A DNA stretch of 64,000 nt from Orbicella franksi. Taxonomy: Eukaryota. Positions within the stretch are counted from its first letter, which is position 1; each line of letters opens with the position of its first letter. Made by a program: the position numbers and the translations under genes. The notes below the pieces were generated by a model, which ran no database searches, had not been told where the DNA came from, and saw only the letters and a list, made by a program, of their open reading frames with translations. Below, piece after piece: positions 5,151-60,176 of this stretch. Location: the NCBI GenBank assembly GCA_964199315.1, contig OZ116699.1, positions 22,444,001 to 22,508,000 on the forward strand, given 5' to 3'.

Positions 5151-7273
5151 GCTTATTTTGAATGTCGTACAGCGGTATTCTCGTGATGCGTGATTAGCTG
5201 ATTTTATTTTCCGTGAAACGTGGATTCAGGAAATTATTCTTCATGATCCGTGACCAAAAGGTTTTGCGTGACCCGTGAAGAACTTGAATTATTCACCGAT
5301 ATTCGTGATTTCACCACTCAACTCTACGTGATTTTGAGACGCGGGTCCTCCGAATGTCTGTCGAGAGTGACTTAGACATGCGATTTACAATATGGAGCCT
5401 TGACTTAGCCTTTCATTATTTTTCCTTCTTCAAACACTTTTTCTAGTGTAAGAACAGGTTACTAAAAGGAGTAGCCTACTTTCTTATTTTTGCGATTCTG
5501 GAAAACGAAATTTTTACATCCATGATCCGTGATCCTCAATTTTTTCCGTTCGTAAACCGTGCCATAGACCCCCCCCTGTACGACTCTCTATGTTGTAGTG
5601 AAAACCAGGCCTTAGGTGTATGGGTATTGTCACCCTTCAGTGGACGAAATTAAATTTTATAAGCAATTTAGTCACGAGTACGCTCTTTTTTATAAGAACG
5701 CCAGGGGATGTGAGGCTGAAATTTCAGTAGTAAAAGAACTTATTTGTTTTCTCCACTTGTTTTGTTACAAGCTTTTAGTACGTGTCTAAATAATATTTCA
5801 TTAATTGGTCTGGATAAATTCAAGCTCGAAATGACTTTGACGTACGTTTCCCGGTCACGTTCACGGTTCAGGTTGATTTGCTGAAAGACTGAAATCGGTG
5901 TAACCATGCAGGTAAAACGTACAAGAACCTTTTTGTTTCATGGGCCCAACAACATTCTGTTCCAGCTGATCTTCAGCTCAAAAACTAAATGTTCACTCTG
6001 AAAGATAGTGGTAGTATATAATATATATCAACAGAAACTACACGTACGCTTATCTAGTCTTTACGCGTGAGGGTTGGTAGGAGGCCAGGTTTTTTAGTCT
6101 GGTTTCGCAAGCCCACGGACAAGGTCATCTGTCACGCAGTTGAGATCAGTCCACATCCAGAGGTCCACATCCTTGGAGGGGGGAGGCAAGGGACCCTATG
6201 GTGTTGAAATGTCCTGCCTAAGTACGATCCGGCCAACACAGGCTCTTCTAGAATTTAGCCTGCGTCTCAGACAGAGTAAACCGCCGGGCTATATTGCGGA
6301 TTTTGCGACACGTCCAGCTGTAACGCAGTATACTAGAGCGAAATTCCCGTACCGTCTCATCTACGTCACAAGCTGCGTCACACACAGTCTAAACCGCCGA
6401 ACTATATCGCGGATTTTGTGACCATCCGGTTCTACTATAAATTGGCAAATTATTTCCTCTCAAATGTCAGTTAAGTTCGAAACTCCCGTCACATCTACGT
6501 CACAAGCTCATACGGTTTGGTTTCCTCTATAGTTTGTGCGTCATTCATACCAGACCACATGCAACCTGGAGAGGAGGTGTTCTTGCCATCACACCCTAAA
6601 CTGATCCACAAGAAATAACGGGCCTCTTTCTCACCATGTTATATTGTTCGTTTGAATAAGTTTCTCCACCCCAGGATGGTCGGCTCCACCTTTTGTACCC
6701 TCATAACGACAGGATGTGCTTAACTTGTAGTTTCTGAGGCGTTGTAGTTTTAAATTTTCAGTGGAACATGATGGTCTCTCAACCCTTTGAAAATTCCTTA
6801 CCCATCATTTCTAATTCTAATTCTAACCCTAACCCTCAATGAAGAAGTCGAAGGGGTCTAAATGAACCGGCCCCTCTTCTCAAATGAGGTTAGCACTGCC
6901 ACCATTTGAGGGTCAGTCATTGCCCAGAATGCCACGACATAGGAGTAATCAGACTTGTACATGTAATCTCTGCTTGCTCAGCCTTACGAAATAGTTTTTC
7001 TCCAGCCAAGCTCCAGGCAATAACCACTTTGCTTTTGAAAGTGAATGCCATTGTTCTCATTCTCTATTCTTGAGTTACACCATGTGTTCCAGAAGGCGAC
7101 AACGTGCCGAAAGAAAGGGCCTTCTGAGCATGCTCTGTCTGTCAACCCCTGCACAAAAACCTATTCTTCTGTCGTTTCTTTCTACTCAGCTGTTGCACAA
7201 AGCAGGTACTTGCTTTGCGCACTACACCGCTGCTAAAAAGCTTTTCATTTACTGGACAGTATTTCTTCGCGTC

Positions 7274-43801: not shown

Positions 43802-46454
43802 GGTTGACTTATACATGACTTTGTTAAATTGTTTTAGTGACGTGAACTTTTGTGGGAAATAAGGAAAATAGATATTAGTGATTGATTGATTGATTGATTG
43901 AGAGAATTACTGATTGATCATAATTTAACTTATTTTGTATGGGTGACATTACATTTTGAGCATTTGTTTGAGTCATTTGTCCAAGCCATCACTTTCTTTC
44001 AGTTCAAATATGATGATTGTGTTACTTTATTGTCACTTGCAAACTTATCTTTATTTTTGTACCCCTTAAAACTGGATACTCATTCATGCAATTAATTATT
44101 GTTGTTCAGAAACATTTATTTATTTTACTAAGAGAATATATTTAATATATCACAGTCAACCTAATCAACTTTTAAGATCTTTAATTTTGTAGGTTTCCAT
44201 TTCATTTTGATTACTTTTTAGACATGGCATTACTTAATTAAGTCACCGGTGTACAGGTTTAACTTAAAAAGTGGGGGAAAAAAACAAAAAAGTCATTTCT
44301 CATTATAGGCAGGATGTACCATACGGTTTTGATTTTTGCAACTATACCTAAATCCAGTTAATGTCTACATGGTTGTGTGATGGTTTCAAAATCCATATTA
44401 ATATATTTGTGATCAGTTAGTTTTTGGTTTCAACTATTTGTGGATCATTTCCATGCATTTAAGCTCCCTTATGTCCAAATATTATATCCCTAGCCAATTT
44501 ACAGGGATAAACTGAAACAAAAGTTAACTTACCCAAAGAAAATTGAAATCAAAAATTAACTACAACATAGACATATTTGTAGTGGAAACAGGTCTAAGTG
44601 GAGTCAAATCTGGTCTAATTGCAAGCTAAATAAGAGGACTGTGAATTGGGAATCCTAAATTTTACTTGATTGCAAGCAAGGATGCAGAATTGGACCTGCT
44701 AGCAACAAATCAAAACTATACCTCTATAGCTGTAAATTTAATTTGACAAAACTGTTGATTAAACCCCTTGATAAACGAAAATTATAACAGTTGAGTTCGT
44801 TTTTAACCAAGATACATAAGAAAAGTATTCATTCAAGTCGTAATGTCCAAATTACTCTGCCACTTTTCCACACTGCTTATTTTGGCTTAATATGGACCTA
44901 CTGATAATAATATTATTGAATTTGATTTTTATTTGATAGTAATAGTTTTGCTGAAGTTCTGAATGTAATTGCCCCTTTTGACATCGAGATCTATTGAGTA
45001 ATATATATAGTATCTATTTATTTTTAATCTAGTTTAAGGTTTAGGACACAACTTTGCGCTTTGAAAAAAAGTGATAACTATTTATAGATGAACAGATTCT
45101 TGAAACTGTGTAAGGGTTTGGTTGCAAGGGCTAGAACCTAGTGAACCTCGTTGTAAAGAATGTCAAGATTATAAAATTAATATAATTATCAAGATATTGT
45201 AAATGATGTGAGTCTGTATTGTACATTAATTTTGTTTCCTTTTAGCAGAGAAAACAGTTACTTCATCTTTTTTCCCATGGAAAAGTGCGATAAGTTAAAG
45301 AAAAATAAAGTTCTAAAACGTTGATAAAAAGAGTACTTATTCAAGGATATTTGTTTTAAAATGTAGTCTTTTTGTTGTTCTATTATTTTGTGGATTGTCA
45401 GTGACTTGGGTTTACTAGTATGTGCTGGACATAATATAACTCTAGCTCTATTGTCGAGCGTGAAAGTGGAAGAATCGAACAAAAGGAACAATTTATTTAA
45501 TCACCAAATTCGGAAGATAGAGAAATATGGTTTAAGAGCTAGATGAAGCTGGCAGGATTTTGTCTGAAAAAGTGCTCTTTTTCAGCGGCATATCGTTGAA
45601 CACCGGAAGGAACTACAACCAACTCAAACGAGGGTGGGCGAGGGGTTCAAAAAGAGCAGAAACAGTGCCACAAGTGACTAACAGAAACGATTGGGTAAGT
45701 AAAATGAGAGTTTGACAGACCCTCTCCCACAAATAACGGAAAGGGGCATTCATAGGCTGAATATAGAAAACGTCGGTCTTCGATTTTCTAGTCTGCGTAG
45801 CAAGGTTCCCGTATGAAGAGCATTCCCGCACTCTGGCAGCGCGTAAACTGGAGCGAGAGCAAAAAATGCGGAAAAGTAAAGCTCTTCGCACAGAAACGCT
45901 GGTTACGTAAGCTACCGATTTTCCTGCACGTAGAAGGATTTCAGAAGTGCTAATTTTCTCTTTCAAGGATAAAGAAACACTTGAAATTCAACGTGCACTT
46001 AGCTAGCCCTATTCTGGACGGTGCTCGGACAGTTTTAGATGATCCTCCGAATTGCGGTCACTTTCACCAACGAGTGTTTAGCCAACGACTCGTTCGCCAA
46101 CGTCTTAGGCCGATTCGTCAGCGTCCTATGTCGCTTCGCCAACGTCCTACTGGTCAATTCGCCAACGTCAGGTATCCTCTTAGTCGGATAAGTGCGGCTT
46201 GGCGCACTGGAGGCCAATGTCGAAGCCTAGATGCAAAAAATGTACCCAGGCGTTGAATAAATCTAAACGGTTTAGCTGTCTTCTGTCTTCAGTAGGAATA
46301 AAAACAGGTTCACTTGACCAGCACTACTCAAATTACTCATATTAGACAGGAAGTTCTGATATAAAATGGAAAGCATATCTTATATTTGTCACCTTTCACT
46401 GGCAAAATTCAAACTTGTACCCTTCCATTCTTGCCGGGGCATTCATGGTTGTTT

Positions 46455-46646
46455 TTATATCTCTCAGTTAGTACGCGCGCTGTGATCGGTCAATTTAGCG
46501 GGCCGTATTCTACTATACGGCCCGCTAAAATTTAAAGCCGTTATCGTTGCCAAAATGTTTCGTGATTTATCACGCTTGGGCCATAAATCGATGGGGGAAA
46601 AACTCGGTCCGTAACTTACAGTACGGCCCGCGAACTCGGTTAGTAA
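46455..46646 (+). mobile_element. Internally deleted copy of the repeat at 59707-60176
   Basis: Both ends match 59707-59823 and about 60103-60176, fused at atttatc|acgcttggg. Confidence 0.8.

Positions 46647-46706
<60 letters not shown>
46647..46706 (+). repeat. (AAT)20 microsatellite
   Basis: Perfect trinucleotide run. Confidence 0.98.
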
Positions 46707-47150
46707 TACAACTGTAAAAATTCTTAGGACAATATATATGTCAGGGAAATACTAACTTACAAACGAATTACAAATTACACTCATTCTTTACAACCCTTAT
46801 AAATTTGTCTATTATCATTTGTCGAAAAATTTAAATAAGAATAGTAAAAAATACTCTACACATTTAAATGGCAAAAAATCTACTTTAAAAATACACTGTA
46901 GCTATATGCAGGTCCACTTCTTGGCTCAGTGTTCGTGGCTTCGGCTAGAGTTCCCCAGAAATAGCATTCTCAATTGCCTTAACGAATATTTGCATGTCCT
47001 TTTTCGATATCTAAATCAATGTCCGATAGTTCTAAGTGGACTCTCCTAGGAGCTCGCGAGCCTCTTAAACAAAGTAATGCTGATCTCAGCAGCGCAAAAG
47101 ATACTCTTGCCCTGATCCATGACATGGTAGTCGCATAACTTTCGCCCTTC
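46707..47150 (-). mobile_element. 5'-truncated CRE-like non-LTR retrotransposon (C-terminus plus 3' UTR)
   Basis: The minus-strand frame 47149-46979 reads KGESYATTMSWIRARVSFALLRSALLCLRGSRAPRRVHLELSDIDLDIEKGHANIR*. The SY..TM.WIR..SFALLRSA..C.RGSR motif is the C-terminus typical of CRE-clade elements. It is flanked on both sides by the AAT microsatellite. Confidence 0.75.

Positions 47151-47151
<1 letters not shown>

Positions 47152-47214
<63 letters not shown>
47152..47214 (+). repeat. (AAT)21 microsatellite
   Basis: Perfect trinucleotide run between the two retroelement fragments. Confidence 0.98.
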
Positions 47215-47861
47215 TAGCCATATTGTAAGTTCGTGCTCGAAACTGGCACAAAAAAAATACAAAAGGAGACATGATAACGTGGCTAGAGCAATCCATTGGG
47301 ACCTGTCAGGAAAATGTGGGTTTGAACGAAAGGAGAGATGGTATGACCATGTTCCAGACAGCGTGCTTGAAAATGAGGATTACAAACTTCTATGGGACTT
47401 CAGTGTGCGAACAGACCATGAAATAGGGGCTAGGAGACCGGATTTGGTGATCATTGACAAGAGAGACAAGAGCTGTCAGATTATAGATGTGGCAATTCCA
47501 GAGGATAATGGGGTGAGAGAGAAGGAAGATGAAAAAGTTGAAAAGTATCAAGATCTAGCAAGAGAAGTTCGAAAAATGTGGGGTGTGAGGACAAAGGTTA
47601 TTCCAGTGGTAGTGGGAGCATTGGGATCAATACCACTGAGATTGAAGGACAATCTGAGAGCCATTGAGGTGGGCATTCCTGTTGGACTGATCCAGAGATG
47701 TGCATTGTTGGGGTCGGCAAGAATTCTTAGAAAGGTGCTGGAGATGTAGAAAGAAGAGAAAAAGTAAACAAGGGGTGTTTCTTGGCTTCCCTAGGCAACT
47801 TGTTGTTGCCCGGAGCCAATGACGAAACCAGCTTCAATATCATCAATAGCTGTGCGAATCT
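47213..47861 (+). mobile_element. 5'-truncated R4/Dong-clade non-LTR retrotransposon (zinc-knuckle end, restriction-like endonuclease, 3' UTR)
   Basis: Open frame 47213-47749: ISHIVSSCSKLAQKKYKRRHDNVARAIHW...LLWDFSVRTD...RRPDLVIID...IIDVAIP...KEDEKVEKYQDL...VIPVVVGALG. This gives the HxxxxC knuckle half, RHD and the PD-(D/E)xK endonuclease motifs. It begins exactly at the microsatellite edge, and the 3' UTR ends at the junction with TTAA/(TAA)n. Confidence 0.9.
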
Positions 47862-47865
47862 TTAA

Positions 47866-50044
47866 AGTGCACCTAACCCCAAAAATTTTTTTCCGCTAGA
47901 ACGAATCTACTTATTATTTGAAATAGTTCTGCGAAAAAATTTTTGGATTCCGTTAAATCCTCGATTTTCTGTGCCACGACGAAATCTCGAAAATAGCTCC
48001 AAAACACCGCCATTTTGTTTCACGACCGAGTTTGAGGAGAATGGGTCCAGCGGCTCTTGTGACGTCTACCCAGGAAGGTTGGATATCTCATTTCCTCTCA
48101 TCTCCTTCAGGATGGTGCAATACACATTCGAAAAGTGCGCAGAAGCGCCTTCCAGAGGTGCTATCGGCTGTTGCAGCAATATTCCAGATTTAAAGAAAGG
48201 TATACTGTACAATTTACTGGCGATGATCGGCTAATGGTGCAATAAAGACGTAAACGATGGTTGATTTTGTCGAACCGACAGGGGCACCCAACGGATCGGT
48301 TCGGTAAATTATCTGTTCGGAAGGCCTTTAATCCCCTCTGATTTTCTTGAGAGAATTGGCACCTCGAACTTTCGTGATATGAGAAATTTAATGTCTGTTG
48401 TTTTCGGACTGTTGAAAATGTCGTTTTGAGTACCGAAAAAAGGTCAGCTATCATTTTCGGAAAGGCGATAAGACCTAAGGTTTTCGGGAAATGGACAAAA
48501 AAGCCCTAATAAATTTGAGAATACTCAAGTTCCCTTAGAATATCCGAACAGATAAAATTTTTTTAGTGCAACCTAAAATTAACCTACAGAGCTTTAAAAG
48601 TACTCCAGATAGCCTAAAACAGCATCTAACAGCATTAGAGAGAAAACGGTCGTTGGGTGCCCCTGAACCGAAACAAGCGAACTGAATCTGTGAGAACCAT
48701 TGAAGAACTCTCACTGGAATTTGTTCCGCAGACTTTCGAACGCTGTTTTCATAAATTTTCTGCTTAAAGCTAACCAGCCATTTGTAGAAATACCACCGAC
48801 AACCTATATCTTCCAATCCCGCAGTATTTATAACATAACCGGCAAAGTTGTGTGATCCGGTCATGATCAAGAAGCGTTATACTGATACGTGAATAGATCG
48901 CAACTGTACGCCGCCAACCAACACTTATTTCTCTTTCGATTTAGATGAAAGTCGAAGATTAATCCTCTAGAATTACATGATAACAAAATTGTTAGACTCA
49001 CAGAGTTTTTCGAAGGTTTGGAAATCAGCAGTGTGACAAAGATTCTGTGCAATAGCGTCGAAAATATGACCGCGTAGCATTATCTGCGGACCGCTTAGGG
49101 AACACATCCTTTTCGCTTATCCGACGAATTTCACTGCAAACTTTGAGAACAATTTACATTGGTTATTTGGAGTTACGACTTAAAACGTGTGACAATGTGA
49201 AATCGGTAATTGTATGAAATGTTTCCTTCCGCCTTGCTTCCCGCAGCTTCAAAAATACAGGTCCAAACAACACGATTTTCAATCGATCGAAGCCAATGTT
49301 TTGGAGGTCATCAAGTCTCGAAAACTGCAACACGTACGTCGCTCTTATAAACATGAAGCATTCAACTGAAAGTAAAACACAAACTGGATTTAACAGAACC
49401 TTGACAAAATACATTCTCGGTAAGGACAAATGTAAACGGGCTATAAACACGCGTGGGAATCTTATATTTAGTTGACGAAATTACCATCCAAAGCAGTCCT
49501 TGAGTTTTCTTTCCTGCTGTTCGTTTGCCTGCTCCTCCACTTCGTATCTAGCTTTCCATTCCTAATATACAAGCAGCTCGTCCGTAAAGACGTCTTCCCC
49601 GTCGTCGCTTGAAATATTGCAAATTGTTCTCAAAGCTCTAAGCAGTGAGTTCACAGTTGTCGAACGTGCTCGATCGACGTTTATTTCGGAGCCTTCCGAA
49701 TCGAAACTTAACTCTGACTCCAGTGACGAAAAAGAAATGATTCTGAGACAAAACTTGGACGTTTTAGTCCCAAAATACATCGGAACGATTAGTTTTGCAT
49801 TCTATTTTCTCGAGCAAATACAGTGAGTTGACTGAGGCGCTATTGTGTGTGGTTCCTGGGTAGACGTCATCAGGTACCGCCGCCCCAGACTCCCTAAAAC
49901 GCGGTCGTGAAACACTTAATCGCGACTTTGAAAGGGCATAGAAAATCGAGGATTCAACCAAATTCAAAAATTTCTTCGCCCAAATGCTTCAAATAAAGTC
50001 TAGATTTGTTTTAGCGAAAAAAAATTTTTGGGGTTAGGTGCACT
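47866..50044. mobile_element. Kolobok-type DNA transposon relic (TTAA TSD), 2179 bp
   Basis: TTAA at 47862-47865 and 50045-50048. TIRs of about 45 bp (agtgcacctaaccccaaaaattttttt(c)cgcta...) with purine-purine termini. A frameshifted THAP relic on + (CCSN...RRKRW/VDFV...CS.DF/ERCF, about 48150-48750). An acidic relic on - (SSDDGEDVFTDELL..*EWKARYE..EQANEQQERKLK, about 49460-49780), in the convergent layout expected for a Kolobok second gene. Confidence 0.82.
48279..48665. mobile_element. MITE nested inside the Kolobok THAP relic
   Basis: TIR caggggcacccaacg / cgttgggtgcccctg with flanking direct repeat AACCGA (48273-48278 and 48666-48671). Removing it restores the THAP frame VDFVEPKQAN. Confidence 0.8.
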
Positions 50045-50841
50045 TTAATAATAATAACATTTCTAAAGCGCCCTTTCCCAAGGGTCCAAAGGCGTTATTT
50101 ACAAGGTTAAAAATTCATGTATGTATTGTTGTCAAACGTCTTTATAAGCACTCAAATGCTTAAATTAAGGGTGTTTCGTTTTTCGTGATAAAAAAACAAA
50201 CGCTATAAAATAACGACATTTCAACCGATCAACGGTCATTTTCAAGTTGGGTAGGTTTCTTTTCACAGGTTGTATTGTTGCTATGGTAACTTGTTACATG
50301 AAAAGGATGATACCTTTATTGTAGGACCATGTGATAATGAGTGGTAGTACTGATCAAAGGATAAGTGATTGAAAAGCTGGAGACGATTGTAAGCCTCTTT
50401 ATTGAATGTAATGTCAATTTAATAGGCAAGATCAAGAGGAAGAAGATAATAACTCTCAAGTGAGGAGCGTTTTAATATCTTTTCCCGTAAGTCCACAAAG
50501 TATGTATACTTTCGTGGAGTCGTGGTTGCTAATCTTATAATTGGCTCAAAGACTATGAAATCAACGTGAATTTTCAAAATCATATACTGTATATATTGTT
50601 CCTGCTTTTAATTTGATAAGTAGATTGAGAGTTTCTTTAATGAGGGACACATATTGACTTAGCTTCATTTGCTATTACATGCTATTATCATAAAGTAATA
50701 ATAATAATTTAATTTCAAAAATTGGCTTACCATTGCCAGGTTGGTTCCCTATAGATAAATCACAGCTCCCTTCACTCAAAAACGCCGGAGTGTGATGCGA
50801 AAACAAGCGCGAAACTAAAAAAAGACGCAACACCTGCCGTG

Positions 50842-59706: not shown

Positions 59707-60176
59707 TTATATCTCTCAGTTAGTAAGCGCGCTGTGATTGGTCAATTCAGCGGGCCGTATTCTACTATACGGCGTGCTAAAATTTAAAGCCGTTATTGTT
59801 GTCAAAATGTTTCGTGATTTATCGCCAAGTTTTCTTAACTTTTTTAGCAAGTAAAAGTTTAAAGCTTTCTTTTACTTCTGAAATTTTATATTTGAACCTG
59901 TTAACGACGTAAGAGTCACTTAACAACGATTTCAAATTGACTCGTCAGAAATTTGAAGCCATTCCGCGTGAGTAGAAATCGTTCCCGAACCCGTCAGACA
60001 CAGTAGAGATATAATAAATATCTTACTAACCTCGTTTTCTTGGTCCGTATTGTAAGTAACGGAACCTCGTTTTTCCCCTTCGATTTATGGCCACGCGTTT
60101 CGCGCTTGGGCCATAAATCGATGGGGAAAAGACTCGGTCCGTAACTTACAGTACGGCCCGCGAACTCGGTTAGTAA
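59707..60176 (+). mobile_element. Full-length dispersed repeat (parent of 46455-46646)
   Basis: Shares both ends with the deleted copy at 46455-46646. Confidence 0.7.

Follow-up and report, generated by a model that had tools for sequence, protein, structure and literature searches.

The window analysed here is a 64-kb stretch of the genome of the stony coral Orbicella franksi (GCA_964199315.1, contig OZ116699.1, 22,444,001-22,508,000), and all coordinates are positions within it unless a contig or locus is named. The locus at ~46647-50060 holds, from left to right, (AAT)20, a minus-strand fragment of retrotransposon family A, (AAT)21, a plus-strand fragment of retrotransposon family B, a 2.18-kb inverted-repeat transposon with a nested MITE between two copies of TTAA, and a short TAA remnant. 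An earlier note on this DNA had claimed this order of parts, which was confirmed by Tandem Repeats Finder and by comparison with genomic copies. The features are:

46452..46646, no strand: end of an older, unrelated transposon, internally deleted, at the left border of the microsatellite
46647..46706, no strand: perfect (AAT)20, which adjoins fragment A at its 3' end and is (ATT)n on the A sense strand
46707..47150, minus strand: fragment of retrotransposon family A, with copies of this repeat family in the genome
47151..47214, no strand: perfect (AAT)21 between the 5' ends of A and B, a target-derived repeat and not a tail
47215..47861, plus strand: fragment of the Dong-like retrotransposon family B, with copies of this repeat family in the genome
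47862..47865, no strand: left TTAA target-site duplication, composed of the terminal T's of B and the first TAA of the repeat
47866..50044, no strand: non-autonomous TTAA-specific DNA transposon, Kolobok-like, at least 38 copies at 98-99% identity
48279..48665, no strand: nested MITE of 387 bp with inverted ends CAGGGGCACCCAACG
50045..50058, no strand: right TTAA duplication, then the remaining (TAA)3-C of the microsatellite
~50059..50118, probably minus strand: 58-bp end piece of a third repeat family

Tandem Repeats Finder placed a perfect (AAT)20 at 46647-46706 and a perfect (AAT)21.3 at 47151-47214, and the 64-kb window has no other (AAT)n or (ATT)n run of five or more units. On the right side of the transposon just four TAA units are left, which corrects the (TAA)n run given in the earlier note. 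For the transposon at the left border, the genome gave at least 40 matches (91-96% identity, two pieces), and its second copy in the window (59707-60176) has no adjoining microsatellite. The third repeat family has at least 13 genomic matches, limited to the 58 nt, and TAATAATAA or a close variant of it stands before each of the 14 pattern matches; the piece is probably a heavily 5'-truncated retroelement whose 3' end lies on the repeat with the same polarity as A. Contigs from three DNA runs end at the repeats, and neither an empty nor a filled allele could be called at this locus. One RNA run gave 36 reads only, mainly from MITE copies elsewhere.

Fragment A comprises the last 57 ORF codons (stop codon 46979-46981) and 272 nt of 3' UTR, and the genome contains at least 43 matches to it that are 96-98% identical. 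Other A copies extend beyond position 444 of the fragment, so the window copy is 5'-truncated (at 47150) exactly at (AAT)21. Fragment B comprises the last 178 codons, which encode the endonuclease domain, a stop codon at 47747-47749 and a 112-nt 3' UTR. It has at least 41 genomic matches at 97-99% and is 5'-truncated at 47215, again exactly at the repeat edge. Thus genomic copies that continue further 5' bear out the claim that both retroelements are truncated precisely at the edges of the microsatellite. A second correction concerns the 3' end of A: the window copy is without the last 24 nt of the family 3' end, which has to be explained by priming at an internal 3-nt match or by a deletion after insertion.

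Copies of both families share a common 3' end, stop at variable points at the 5' end and have no terminal repeats, as is typical of RLE-bearing non-LTR retrotransposons. One B copy (C10:11309796-11311418:-) lies within a 1134-aa open frame without stops. RVT_1 was detected in B at 2.9e-28 and zf-RVT at 1e-4 (under the Pfam cut-off); the knuckle reads C-R-I-C-x8-H-x4-C and the endonuclease motifs RPD...IIDV...EKVEKY. The best PDB matches of B are R2 proteins (8e-20), and its catalytic residues are invariant in 20 relatives. By its sequence, B is an RLE-bearing (R2-group) non-LTR retrotransposon, whose single ORF carries a reverse transcriptase (RT) followed by a CCHC knuckle and then a PD-(D/E)XK endonuclease. 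Word-index protein searches (240 relatives) and an ESM Atlas search returned only proteins of cnidarians, sponges and metagenomes, unnamed or labelled 'uncharacterized', and a literature search for Repbase family names found none. A viral-contig scan gave no match with a single B-family protein as query and one distant relative with an alignment as query. Rfam found no HDV-like ribozyme in the distant B relative L141, the sole relative whose 5' end was covered.

For family A, the long copy L042:2276-4540:- encodes RT, CCHC knuckle and endonuclease, and its C-terminal peptide is the same as that of fragment A. A sister family, A2, is 64% identical. RVT_1 was detected in A/A2 at 5e-8 (5.4e-8), and C953, C955, H963 and C967 together with D1022, D1038 and K1065 are invariant in 22 relatives. 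A model of the A/A2 C-terminal domain (pLDDT 81) gave seven PDB matches with E <= 0.001, all of them R2 proteins (E 1.7e-5 to 4e-4, probability 1.00), and the weaker matches were PD-(D/E)XK nucleases and Prp8. By sequence and model, A/A2 thus have the same architecture as B, that of a single-ORF RLE-bearing (R2-group) element with RT, CCHC knuckle and PD-(D/E)XK endonuclease. A/A2 showed no N-terminal zinc finger, and a search of the 5' ends for HDV-like ribozymes, in A2 copies as well as in relatives, found none. The similarity between A and B is confined to the RT core, at 22% identity (hhalign E 0.046), so the two are not one family. Against R2, the profile E value was 3e-6 for the A/A2 RT and 8e-20 for B.

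Junctions were scored in the best-scoring 20-40 copies per family, and a 5' junction was taken as positive when at least three sense repeat units lay within 15 nt of the variable truncation point. At the 3' end, all B copies examined read ...GAATCT and then directly (TAA)n, mostly TTAATAATAA. Nearly all A copies end ...AATAAAC followed by ATTATT, the exceptions being copies cut short at the 3' end. At the 5' end, three or more sense TAA units adjoin 16 of the 19 truncated B copies, and three or more sense ATT units adjoin 12 of the 18 truncated A copies, leaving 3/19 B copies and one third of the truncated A copies with no repeat at this junction. In A2, one copy of which has a 1166-aa ORF, (ATT)n was found at both flanks. 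A B relative from another organism, 32% identical, lies between (ATA)17 and (TAA)97. Copies therefore sit at (AAT)n/(TAA)n rather than at random sites.

Could the AAT runs be nothing but the elements' own 3' tails, produced by RT slippage or read-through at unselected insertion sites, so that the repeat is a product of insertion? The repeat is indeed present at the 3' end of all B and nearly all A copies examined, and some upstream repeats are the tail of another element arranged head to tail (L018, L017, L019, L066). Two A copies (L011 and C6:15111567) carry a repeat of the wrong polarity at the 5' end, and these junctions suggest a (UAA)n tail on B-type RNAs. However, 28 of 37 5'-truncated copies adjoin the repeat at variable points, with mostly unrelated sequence past the repeat, and the repeat lies at both sides of full-length A2 and of the relatives L074 and L094. 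In the window, the 5' ends of A (minus strand) and B (plus strand) face each other across (AAT)21, which is thus the tail of neither. Tails as the sole origin of the runs were rejected, and the idea as a whole has very little probability in our judgement.

The earlier note had proposed that two different lineages share one repeat and use its opposite strands. That two different endonuclease-bearing lineages use this repeat in fixed and opposite polarity is shown by the junction census together with the head-to-head geometry in the window. Among the 41 listed B places, eight (seven loci) lie no more than ~5 kb from an A or A2 copy, in opposite orientation at six of the seven loci and in the same orientation at one. 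AT-rich microsatellites might instead gather mobile elements of every kind because they are fragile or tolerated, without sequence-specific recognition by the element proteins, and the locus does also hold a DNA transposon, a MITE, the older left-border transposon and the third repeat fragment. Passive gathering of this kind leaves unexplained why each lineage keeps a fixed polarity and a constant phase at the 3' junction, and why the 32%-identical B relative of another organism has its target and polarity unchanged. Moreover, the DNA transposon entered a TTAA made by B rather than the repeat, and the other window copy of the left-border transposon lies away from any repeat. We regard clustering without recognition as highly unlikely.

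It is also conceivable that a single event produced A, the middle repeat and B together as a chimera, through template switching or twin priming. R2-type reverse transcriptases jump between RNA templates, and B-(TAA)n-A junctions in the same orientation were found elsewhere. But a template jump would yield the same orientation, whereas the window elements face each other; twin priming produces inversions within one element and not between families with 22% RT identity; and A and B each have their own repeat-borne 3' junction. A single event is extremely improbable, and A plus B as one composite element was rejected. We therefore consider it very probable that A and B are unrelated RLE-bearing lineages, each specific for this microsatellite, which inserted independently.

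With its TTAAs, the transposon measures 2187 bp (47862-50048). Its inverted ends are 81% complementary over 129 nt (by BLAST, 84% over 114 nt), and a weaker similarity extends to ~215 nt; the termini are 5'-AG...CT-3' and the ends read AGTGCACC...GGTGCACT. TTAA bounds all copies, and paralogous B junctions serve as empty sites. The duplication of TTAA by Kolobok, as stated in the earlier note, is borne out in the literature (PMC9587614), and the TTAA duplication and 5'-RR...YY-3' termini make the element a candidate member by the Kolobok end rules. Assignment to piggyBac, which has 5'-CC...GG-3' next to TTAA, was rejected on the AG...CT termini. The ORFs of the transposon contained no Pfam domain and no transposase remnant.

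Excision in silico of the transposon with one TTAA restored a normal B junction, GAATCT-TTAATAATAA, so that the 3' end of B falls directly on the TAA run as the note had stated, and as in other B copies. Pure (TAA)n has no TTAA, and the B 3' junction (...CTT + TAA) makes one; the target of the transposon thus exists only through B. B inserted before the transposon. The nested MITE, whose inverted ends match perfectly over 15 nt, is flanked by a duplication of 6-7 bp (AACCGA, 48273-48278 and 48666-48671), and the genome has at least 40 copies of it at 98-99%. The host element occurs without the MITE in at least 38 copies that are otherwise identical, with an empty-site overlap of 7 nt. A second composite copy (C8:25448509-25450695) has this MITE in an identical position and resembles the window copy only as far as the TTAAs, which shows that the composite moved as a unit at least once. 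Thus, of the insertion order suggested earlier (microsatellite, retroelements, Kolobok, MITE), B before the transposon stands, whereas the arrival of the MITE after the transposon at this site is just one possibility, given the same MITE in the C8 copy; the transposon may already have held it on arrival.

Taken together, these observations suggest the following course. A pre-existing (TAA)n/(TTA)n microsatellite would have been struck independently by A and B. The protein of each element would recognise the repeat duplex and nick one strand, and the nicked 3' end would prime reverse transcription of the element RNA (target-primed reverse transcription); frequent early stops would leave 5'-truncated copies with both ends inside the repeat. 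Sense-strand (TAA)n in B implies priming from the (TTA)n strand, and sense-strand (ATT)n in A and A2 implies priming from the (TAA)n strand. Priming from opposite strands would thus place A and B in opposite orientation on a shared repeat, as in the window. We infer the first-nicked strand, the nick position and the reading of the repeat by the proteins themselves. The TTAA created at the B 3' junction would then admit the Kolobok-like non-autonomous transposon, which would duplicate it and bring in the MITE that it perhaps held already.

B behaves like Dong of the R4 clade (Bombyx mori, Anopheles and other animals), a label given by target and domains and not by RT phylogeny. Both have a single ORF with RT, a CCHC knuckle with a conserved R and a C-terminal RLE, and both have the (TAA)n target with sense-strand (TAA)n at both junctions (PMC3774820, PMC3636483) and frequent 5' truncation; the Bombyx Dong 5' junction is sense (TAA)7 (PMC3774820). 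Targeting of TAA repeats by the R4/Dong clade, also stated in the earlier note, agrees with the literature (PMC3774820, PMC3636483 and PMC9587614 for the Dong and Kolobok statements). The host of B, in contrast, is a stony coral.

The earlier note called A CRE-like, which is a putative label only. Like the CRE clade (CRE1/2, SLACS, CZAR, MoTeR), A/A2 are RLE-bearing, single-ORF, target-specific LINEs, and their RT is much further from R2 than that of B, as expected for an early-branching lineage. The known targets of CRE elements are spliced-leader genes or telomeres (PMC3636483), whereas the target of A is a microsatellite. A/A2 also differ in the N-terminal zinc finger, which was not found in them, and the CRE tendency towards a shortened RT-to-knuckle linker relative to R2 (PMC5678591) is absent in A2 (~290 residues from FADD to knuckle, against ~304 in B). 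The A knuckle spacing, CX1CX7HX3C, lies outside the CX2-3CX7-8HX4C reported for RLE LINEs. Related families on different simple repeats, as among the relatives of A, are known from Togen on (TG)n, some HERO and the R1-clade Waldo, Mino, Kibi and Koshi (PMC4640811); the R1-clade microsatellite LINEs have an AP-type endonuclease, unlike the RLE of A. R1 and R2 in 28S rDNA are likewise independent lineages on one multicopy target, a safe-haven strategy, but they use different nearby sites, whereas A and B use opposite strands of one non-coding trinucleotide repeat. The transposon resembles Kolobok elements such as Xenopus T2-MITE/XKol in its TTAA duplication and 5'-RR...YY-3' termini, with AG...CT as in XKol (PMC9587614, PMC6004289). 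Kolobok is known in cnidarians; the window element differs in being non-autonomous, and an autonomous partner was not found.

In marine metagenomes, distant A relatives have (AGT)n, (ACT)n, (AAG)n, (AGTT)n or (ATT)n on both sides or downstream, though of the relatives that could be evaluated just about half show a downstream repeat. When repeat type was mapped on a tree of 70 A-lineage proteins, it did not cluster (27 changes, with 27.6 as the mean after shuffling), a result of little weight since 41 rows have no known repeat type. Homopolymer runs in database proteins, interpreted as flanking repeats that had been read through, occurred too seldom to be informative. It is conceivable, though less likely than not, that A/A2 belong to a deep, undescribed RLE-LINE lineage of marine animals that radiated onto different microsatellites with strict polarity and a shared 3' design. 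Its hosts may be corals, anemones, sponges and metagenome hosts, its repeats (ATT)n, (AGT)n and the complement (ACT)n, (AAG)n and (AGTT)n, and its 3' design AATAAA, ~10 nt and then the repeat; in corals, it may share the (TAA)n duplex with Dong-like elements by way of the other strand. If true, this lineage would offer a natural set of close protein relatives, each reading another simple repeat. The relatives of A suggest many switches of repeat specificity and polarity inside a single protein family, and if this holds, comparing the N-terminal and endonuclease regions could reveal how sequence and strand are chosen.

How mobile elements can survive in a genome without disrupting its genes is illustrated by target-specific LINEs, and relatives of R2 are under development as site-specific DNA insertion tools. 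As an example of target-specific mobile DNA, the locus is clear and for the most part ordinary. Together with its genomic copies it offers a clean natural example of two unrelated RLE LINE lineages on opposite strands of one trinucleotide repeat. For annotation, gene predictions in public databases run into (AAT)n repeats, and the finding explains such repeats in Orbicella franksi as compound transposon nests.

The microsatellite and its insertions comprise the following features, given in window positions.

46452-46646: end of an older repeat, the left border of the microsatellite
46647-46706: (AAT)20, perfect
46707-47150, minus strand: fragment A, 444 bp
47151-47214: (AAT)21, perfect
47215-47861, plus strand: fragment B, 647 bp
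47866-50044: inverted-end element, 2179 bp, with long inverted ends and TTAA on each side
directly right of the right-hand TTAA, before the 58-bp repeat piece: TAATAATAAC
50059-50118: 58-bp terminal piece of another repeat family

Repeat calls and genomic copies confirmed the anatomy described in the earlier note, namely AAT runs, two retroelements, a TTAA-flanked element and a nested MITE. Apart from these two AAT runs, the 64-kb window, C2:22444001-22508000 of the assembly, has no (AAT)n or (ATT)n of at least five units. The left border is an internally deleted copy of the older repeat (~470 bp if complete, with perfect 15-nt hairpins at 46494-46529), whose second copy in the window, at 59707-60176, does not lie at a microsatellite. 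At 46063-46169, ~500 bp left of the microsatellite, units of 15 and 21 bp (TTCGCCAACG...) form a short tandem array.

Fragment A matches at least 43 places in the genome at 96-98% identity. Other copies run beyond position 444, showing that the minus-strand window copy is 5'-truncated exactly at (AAT)21. At their 3' ends, other copies carry 24 nt before the repeat that are absent here; ATT is common to the repeat and the 3' junction of the window copy, and the missing nucleotides may reflect either priming at an internal position or a subsequent deletion by slippage. A long copy at another genomic locus (L042:2276-4540, minus strand) has a 755-codon open frame encoding a reverse transcriptase (RT; RVT_1 at 5.4e-8), a Cys-x-Cys-x7-His-x3-Cys knuckle and the motifs RLDI...FFDVRV...EKKRxY; the peptide originally quoted for A proved to be the C-terminal end of this frame. 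A sister family, A2, shares 64% protein identity with A and has open frames of up to 1166 codons. Its C-terminal 267 residues were modelled with 25 relatives (pLDDT 81, pTM 0.79), and all seven significant PDB matches (E <= 0.001) were R2 retrotransposon proteins (E 1.7e-5 to 4e-4, probability 1.00), with PD-(D/E)XK nucleases and Prp8 among the weaker ones. In 22 relatives, down to 40% identity, the knuckle cysteines and histidine and the residues D1022, D1038 and K1065 do not vary. Together, the R2-type model matches and the invariant residues indicate that A is a genuine LINE that carries a restriction-like endonuclease.

Fragment B has at least 41 matches at 97-99% identity and corresponds to the last 178 residues of its ORF, with the motifs RPDLVI...IIDVAI...EKVEKY. 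Its 3' end, ...GAATCT, is followed directly by (TAA)n in 20/20 copies examined (mostly TTAATAATAA...). A longer copy encodes an RT (RVT_1 at 2.9e-28) and a C-R-I-C-x8-H-x4-C knuckle; this type of knuckle spacing, with a conserved arginine, is reported for R2, Dong, NeSL and Utopia (PMC5678591). The best solved relatives of B are R2 proteins (8e-20). One copy lies inside a stop-free 1134-codon open frame, which suggests possible present-day activity of the family.

A and B were earlier proposed to be two families, and the comparison of their proteins removes the possibility that both belong to one. By BLASTP they align over the RT core only (22% identity, E 0.022), and profile-profile comparison, with 22 and 20 relatives, gave E 0.046 at best. 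The nearest relatives at protein level belong to Acropora, Montipora, Porites, Oculina and Nematostella; in protein searches, all database relatives were without family names. The label 'Dong-like' for B is based on how the protein is built, the type of its knuckle, its nearness to R2, and its target with polarity. For A, the match of the lineage profile to R2 is confined to the RT (3e-6), a distance that would fit an early-branching lineage. Three features count against the CRE label previously given to A, a name that the analysis does not support: no N-terminal zinc finger was found, its linker is not shortened and its knuckle spacing is unusual.

To read both junctions, copies in the retrieved loci were delimited against long natural copies, with no consensus built; junction counts refer to the best-scoring copies of each family. 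Sense-strand (ATT)n lies directly 3' of nearly all A copies, the exceptions being copies cut short at the 3' end, and at least three ATT units lie within 15 nt of the 5' truncation point in 12 of the 18 copies in which that point is visible. A sense-strand TAA repeat follows all B copies examined, and at least three TAA units lie within 15 nt of the truncation point in 16/19. Truncation points vary from copy to copy in both families, and the DNA past the repeat is mostly unrelated, some of it being the 3' terminus of a different family. (ATT)n flanks A2 copies on both sides, among them the copy with the 1166-codon frame. Since the 5' ends of minus-strand A and plus-strand B face each other in the window, (AAT)21 is not the tail of either; it is the target repeat. 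The junction counts and this head-to-head geometry thus argue against random insertion with self-made tails and for the shared target that had been suggested. In three public protein predictions (P0122, P0129 and P0045), retroelement genes run on into the microsatellite as poly-Ile, poly-Asn or poly-Leu, an annotation artefact from which the adjoining repeat and its orientation can be read.

An A or A2 copy lies within ~5 kb of B at 8 of the 41 listed B places (7 loci); by our own estimate, from ~100 listed A/A2 places in the 497-Mb eukaryotic assembly, the chance expectation is well under one. Orientation is opposite at 6/7 of these loci. At the exception, C6:15111032-15113652, B and A have the same orientation ~45 nt apart, and a 5'-truncated A is preceded by wrong-polarity (TAA)n directly after the B 3' end. 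Another 5'-truncated A copy (L011, 1330-1385) has wrong-polarity (TAA)14 at its 5' end. As a speculation, both could be template-switch chimeras between two LINE RNAs. Overall, junctions and geometry support the main proposal of the earlier note, that two REL lineages use one repeat in opposite orientation.

In target-primed reverse transcription, the strand complementary to the 3' flank on the sense strand would serve as primer. B would prime from the (TTA)n strand and A from the (AAT)n strand, with junction phase suggesting nicks at TTA^TTA and AAT^AAT, respectively; orientation and junction phase are the grounds for these proposed strand and nick assignments. The polarity of B is identical to that of Bombyx Dong, whose 5' junction is sense (TAA)7 (PMC3774820), and DongAg and DongBg are given as elements that insert into microsatellites (PMC3636483). 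A B relative (L141, 32% identical) in an unrelated record lies between (ATA)17 and (TAA)97 (2008-2058, 5688-5978), and this indicates that the target and its polarity are old in the B lineage. The record comes from a collection of viral contigs; what it contains is a LINE inserted in a microsatellite rather than a virus.

On the right, at least 13 genomic places match the 58-nt piece over exactly those 58 nt, and TAATAATAA or a near variant precedes it in 14/14 pattern matches. This piece is probably a third, heavily truncated microsatellite-specific retroelement with the polarity of A.

The TTAA-flanked transposon (2187 bp including both TTAAs) has one full-length match, at C8:25448509-25450695 (99%), the sole other copy with the nested MITE. 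In at least 38 others, the match to positions 1-417 runs straight on into that to 804-2187, the two overlapping by 7 nt, so that the usual transposon is 1.8 kb. The additional 387 bp are a nested MITE, which has a 6-7 bp duplication and itself occurs in at least 40 copies at 98-99%. When the comparison was extended by 300 nt of flanking DNA to left and right, similarity to the C8 copy ended at the TTAAs, indicating a transposition product rather than a segmental duplicate, and therefore that the MITE-bearing composite has transposed as one piece on at least one occasion. There is no TTAA within pure (TAA)n, and the site used is found only at the 3' junction of B (...CTT+TAA), which places B first and the transposon second. 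The insertion order read previously thus stands for B and the transposon; its last step, entry of the MITE at this locus, is not supported, and the MITE may have entered either before or after the transposon arrived here. The termini, TTAA|AG...CT|TTAA, fit the Kolobok rule of TTAA with 5'-RR...YY-3' and do not fit piggyBac (PMC9587614, PMC6004289). The transposon ORFs had no Pfam match. At another locus (L034), the right flank of B holds an element starting TTAA-AGTGCCACTG, a few bases into (TAA)n beside the B 3' end, with ends similar to those of the Kolobok-like element of the window. TTAA at or beside B junctions may be a recurrent target.

The stretch is contained in 20 sequencing runs from 9 studies. 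In three organisms, contigs include the sequences of B, the transposon and the MITE (>=95% identity), but end at the repeats; unique right-flank contigs begin at 50077-50089, without an allele call at the locus. From one poly(A) RNA run there were 36 reads, most of them derived from MITE copies within other transcripts.

A scan of metagenome contigs with A yielded 80 loci (39-97% identity), 68 of them with a frame of at least 550 codons, and ~26 of these with enough downstream sequence to judge. Fourteen of the ~26 have a simple repeat 100-350 nt past the stop codon: (AGT)n in L066, L073 and L100, (ACT)n in L074 and L094, (ATT)n in L071, L080 and L110, (AAG)n in L087 and L132, (AGTT)24 in L133, and further types. 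The repeat is identical on both sides in L066, L074 and L094. Identity to A is 40-46% for L066, L073, L074, L087, L094, L100, L132 and L133. In most repeat-flanked relatives the 3' UTR ends in AATAAA or a near variant, ~10 nt and then the repeat; other relatives lack a repeat, or have instead a poly(A) run or telomere-like repeats, the last as in L112, where (CCCTAA)n lies ~390 nt past the ORF stop in place of a trinucleotide repeat. Repeat type was not clustered on the tree of A relatives, in which most rows have no assigned type. As a lead, this points to repeated switching of repeat specificity in the A lineage. Taken together, the locus offers a good example from nature of something already known, microsatellite-specific LINEs that bear an endonuclease, joined here by a second lineage, of opposite polarity to B, that may be undescribed.
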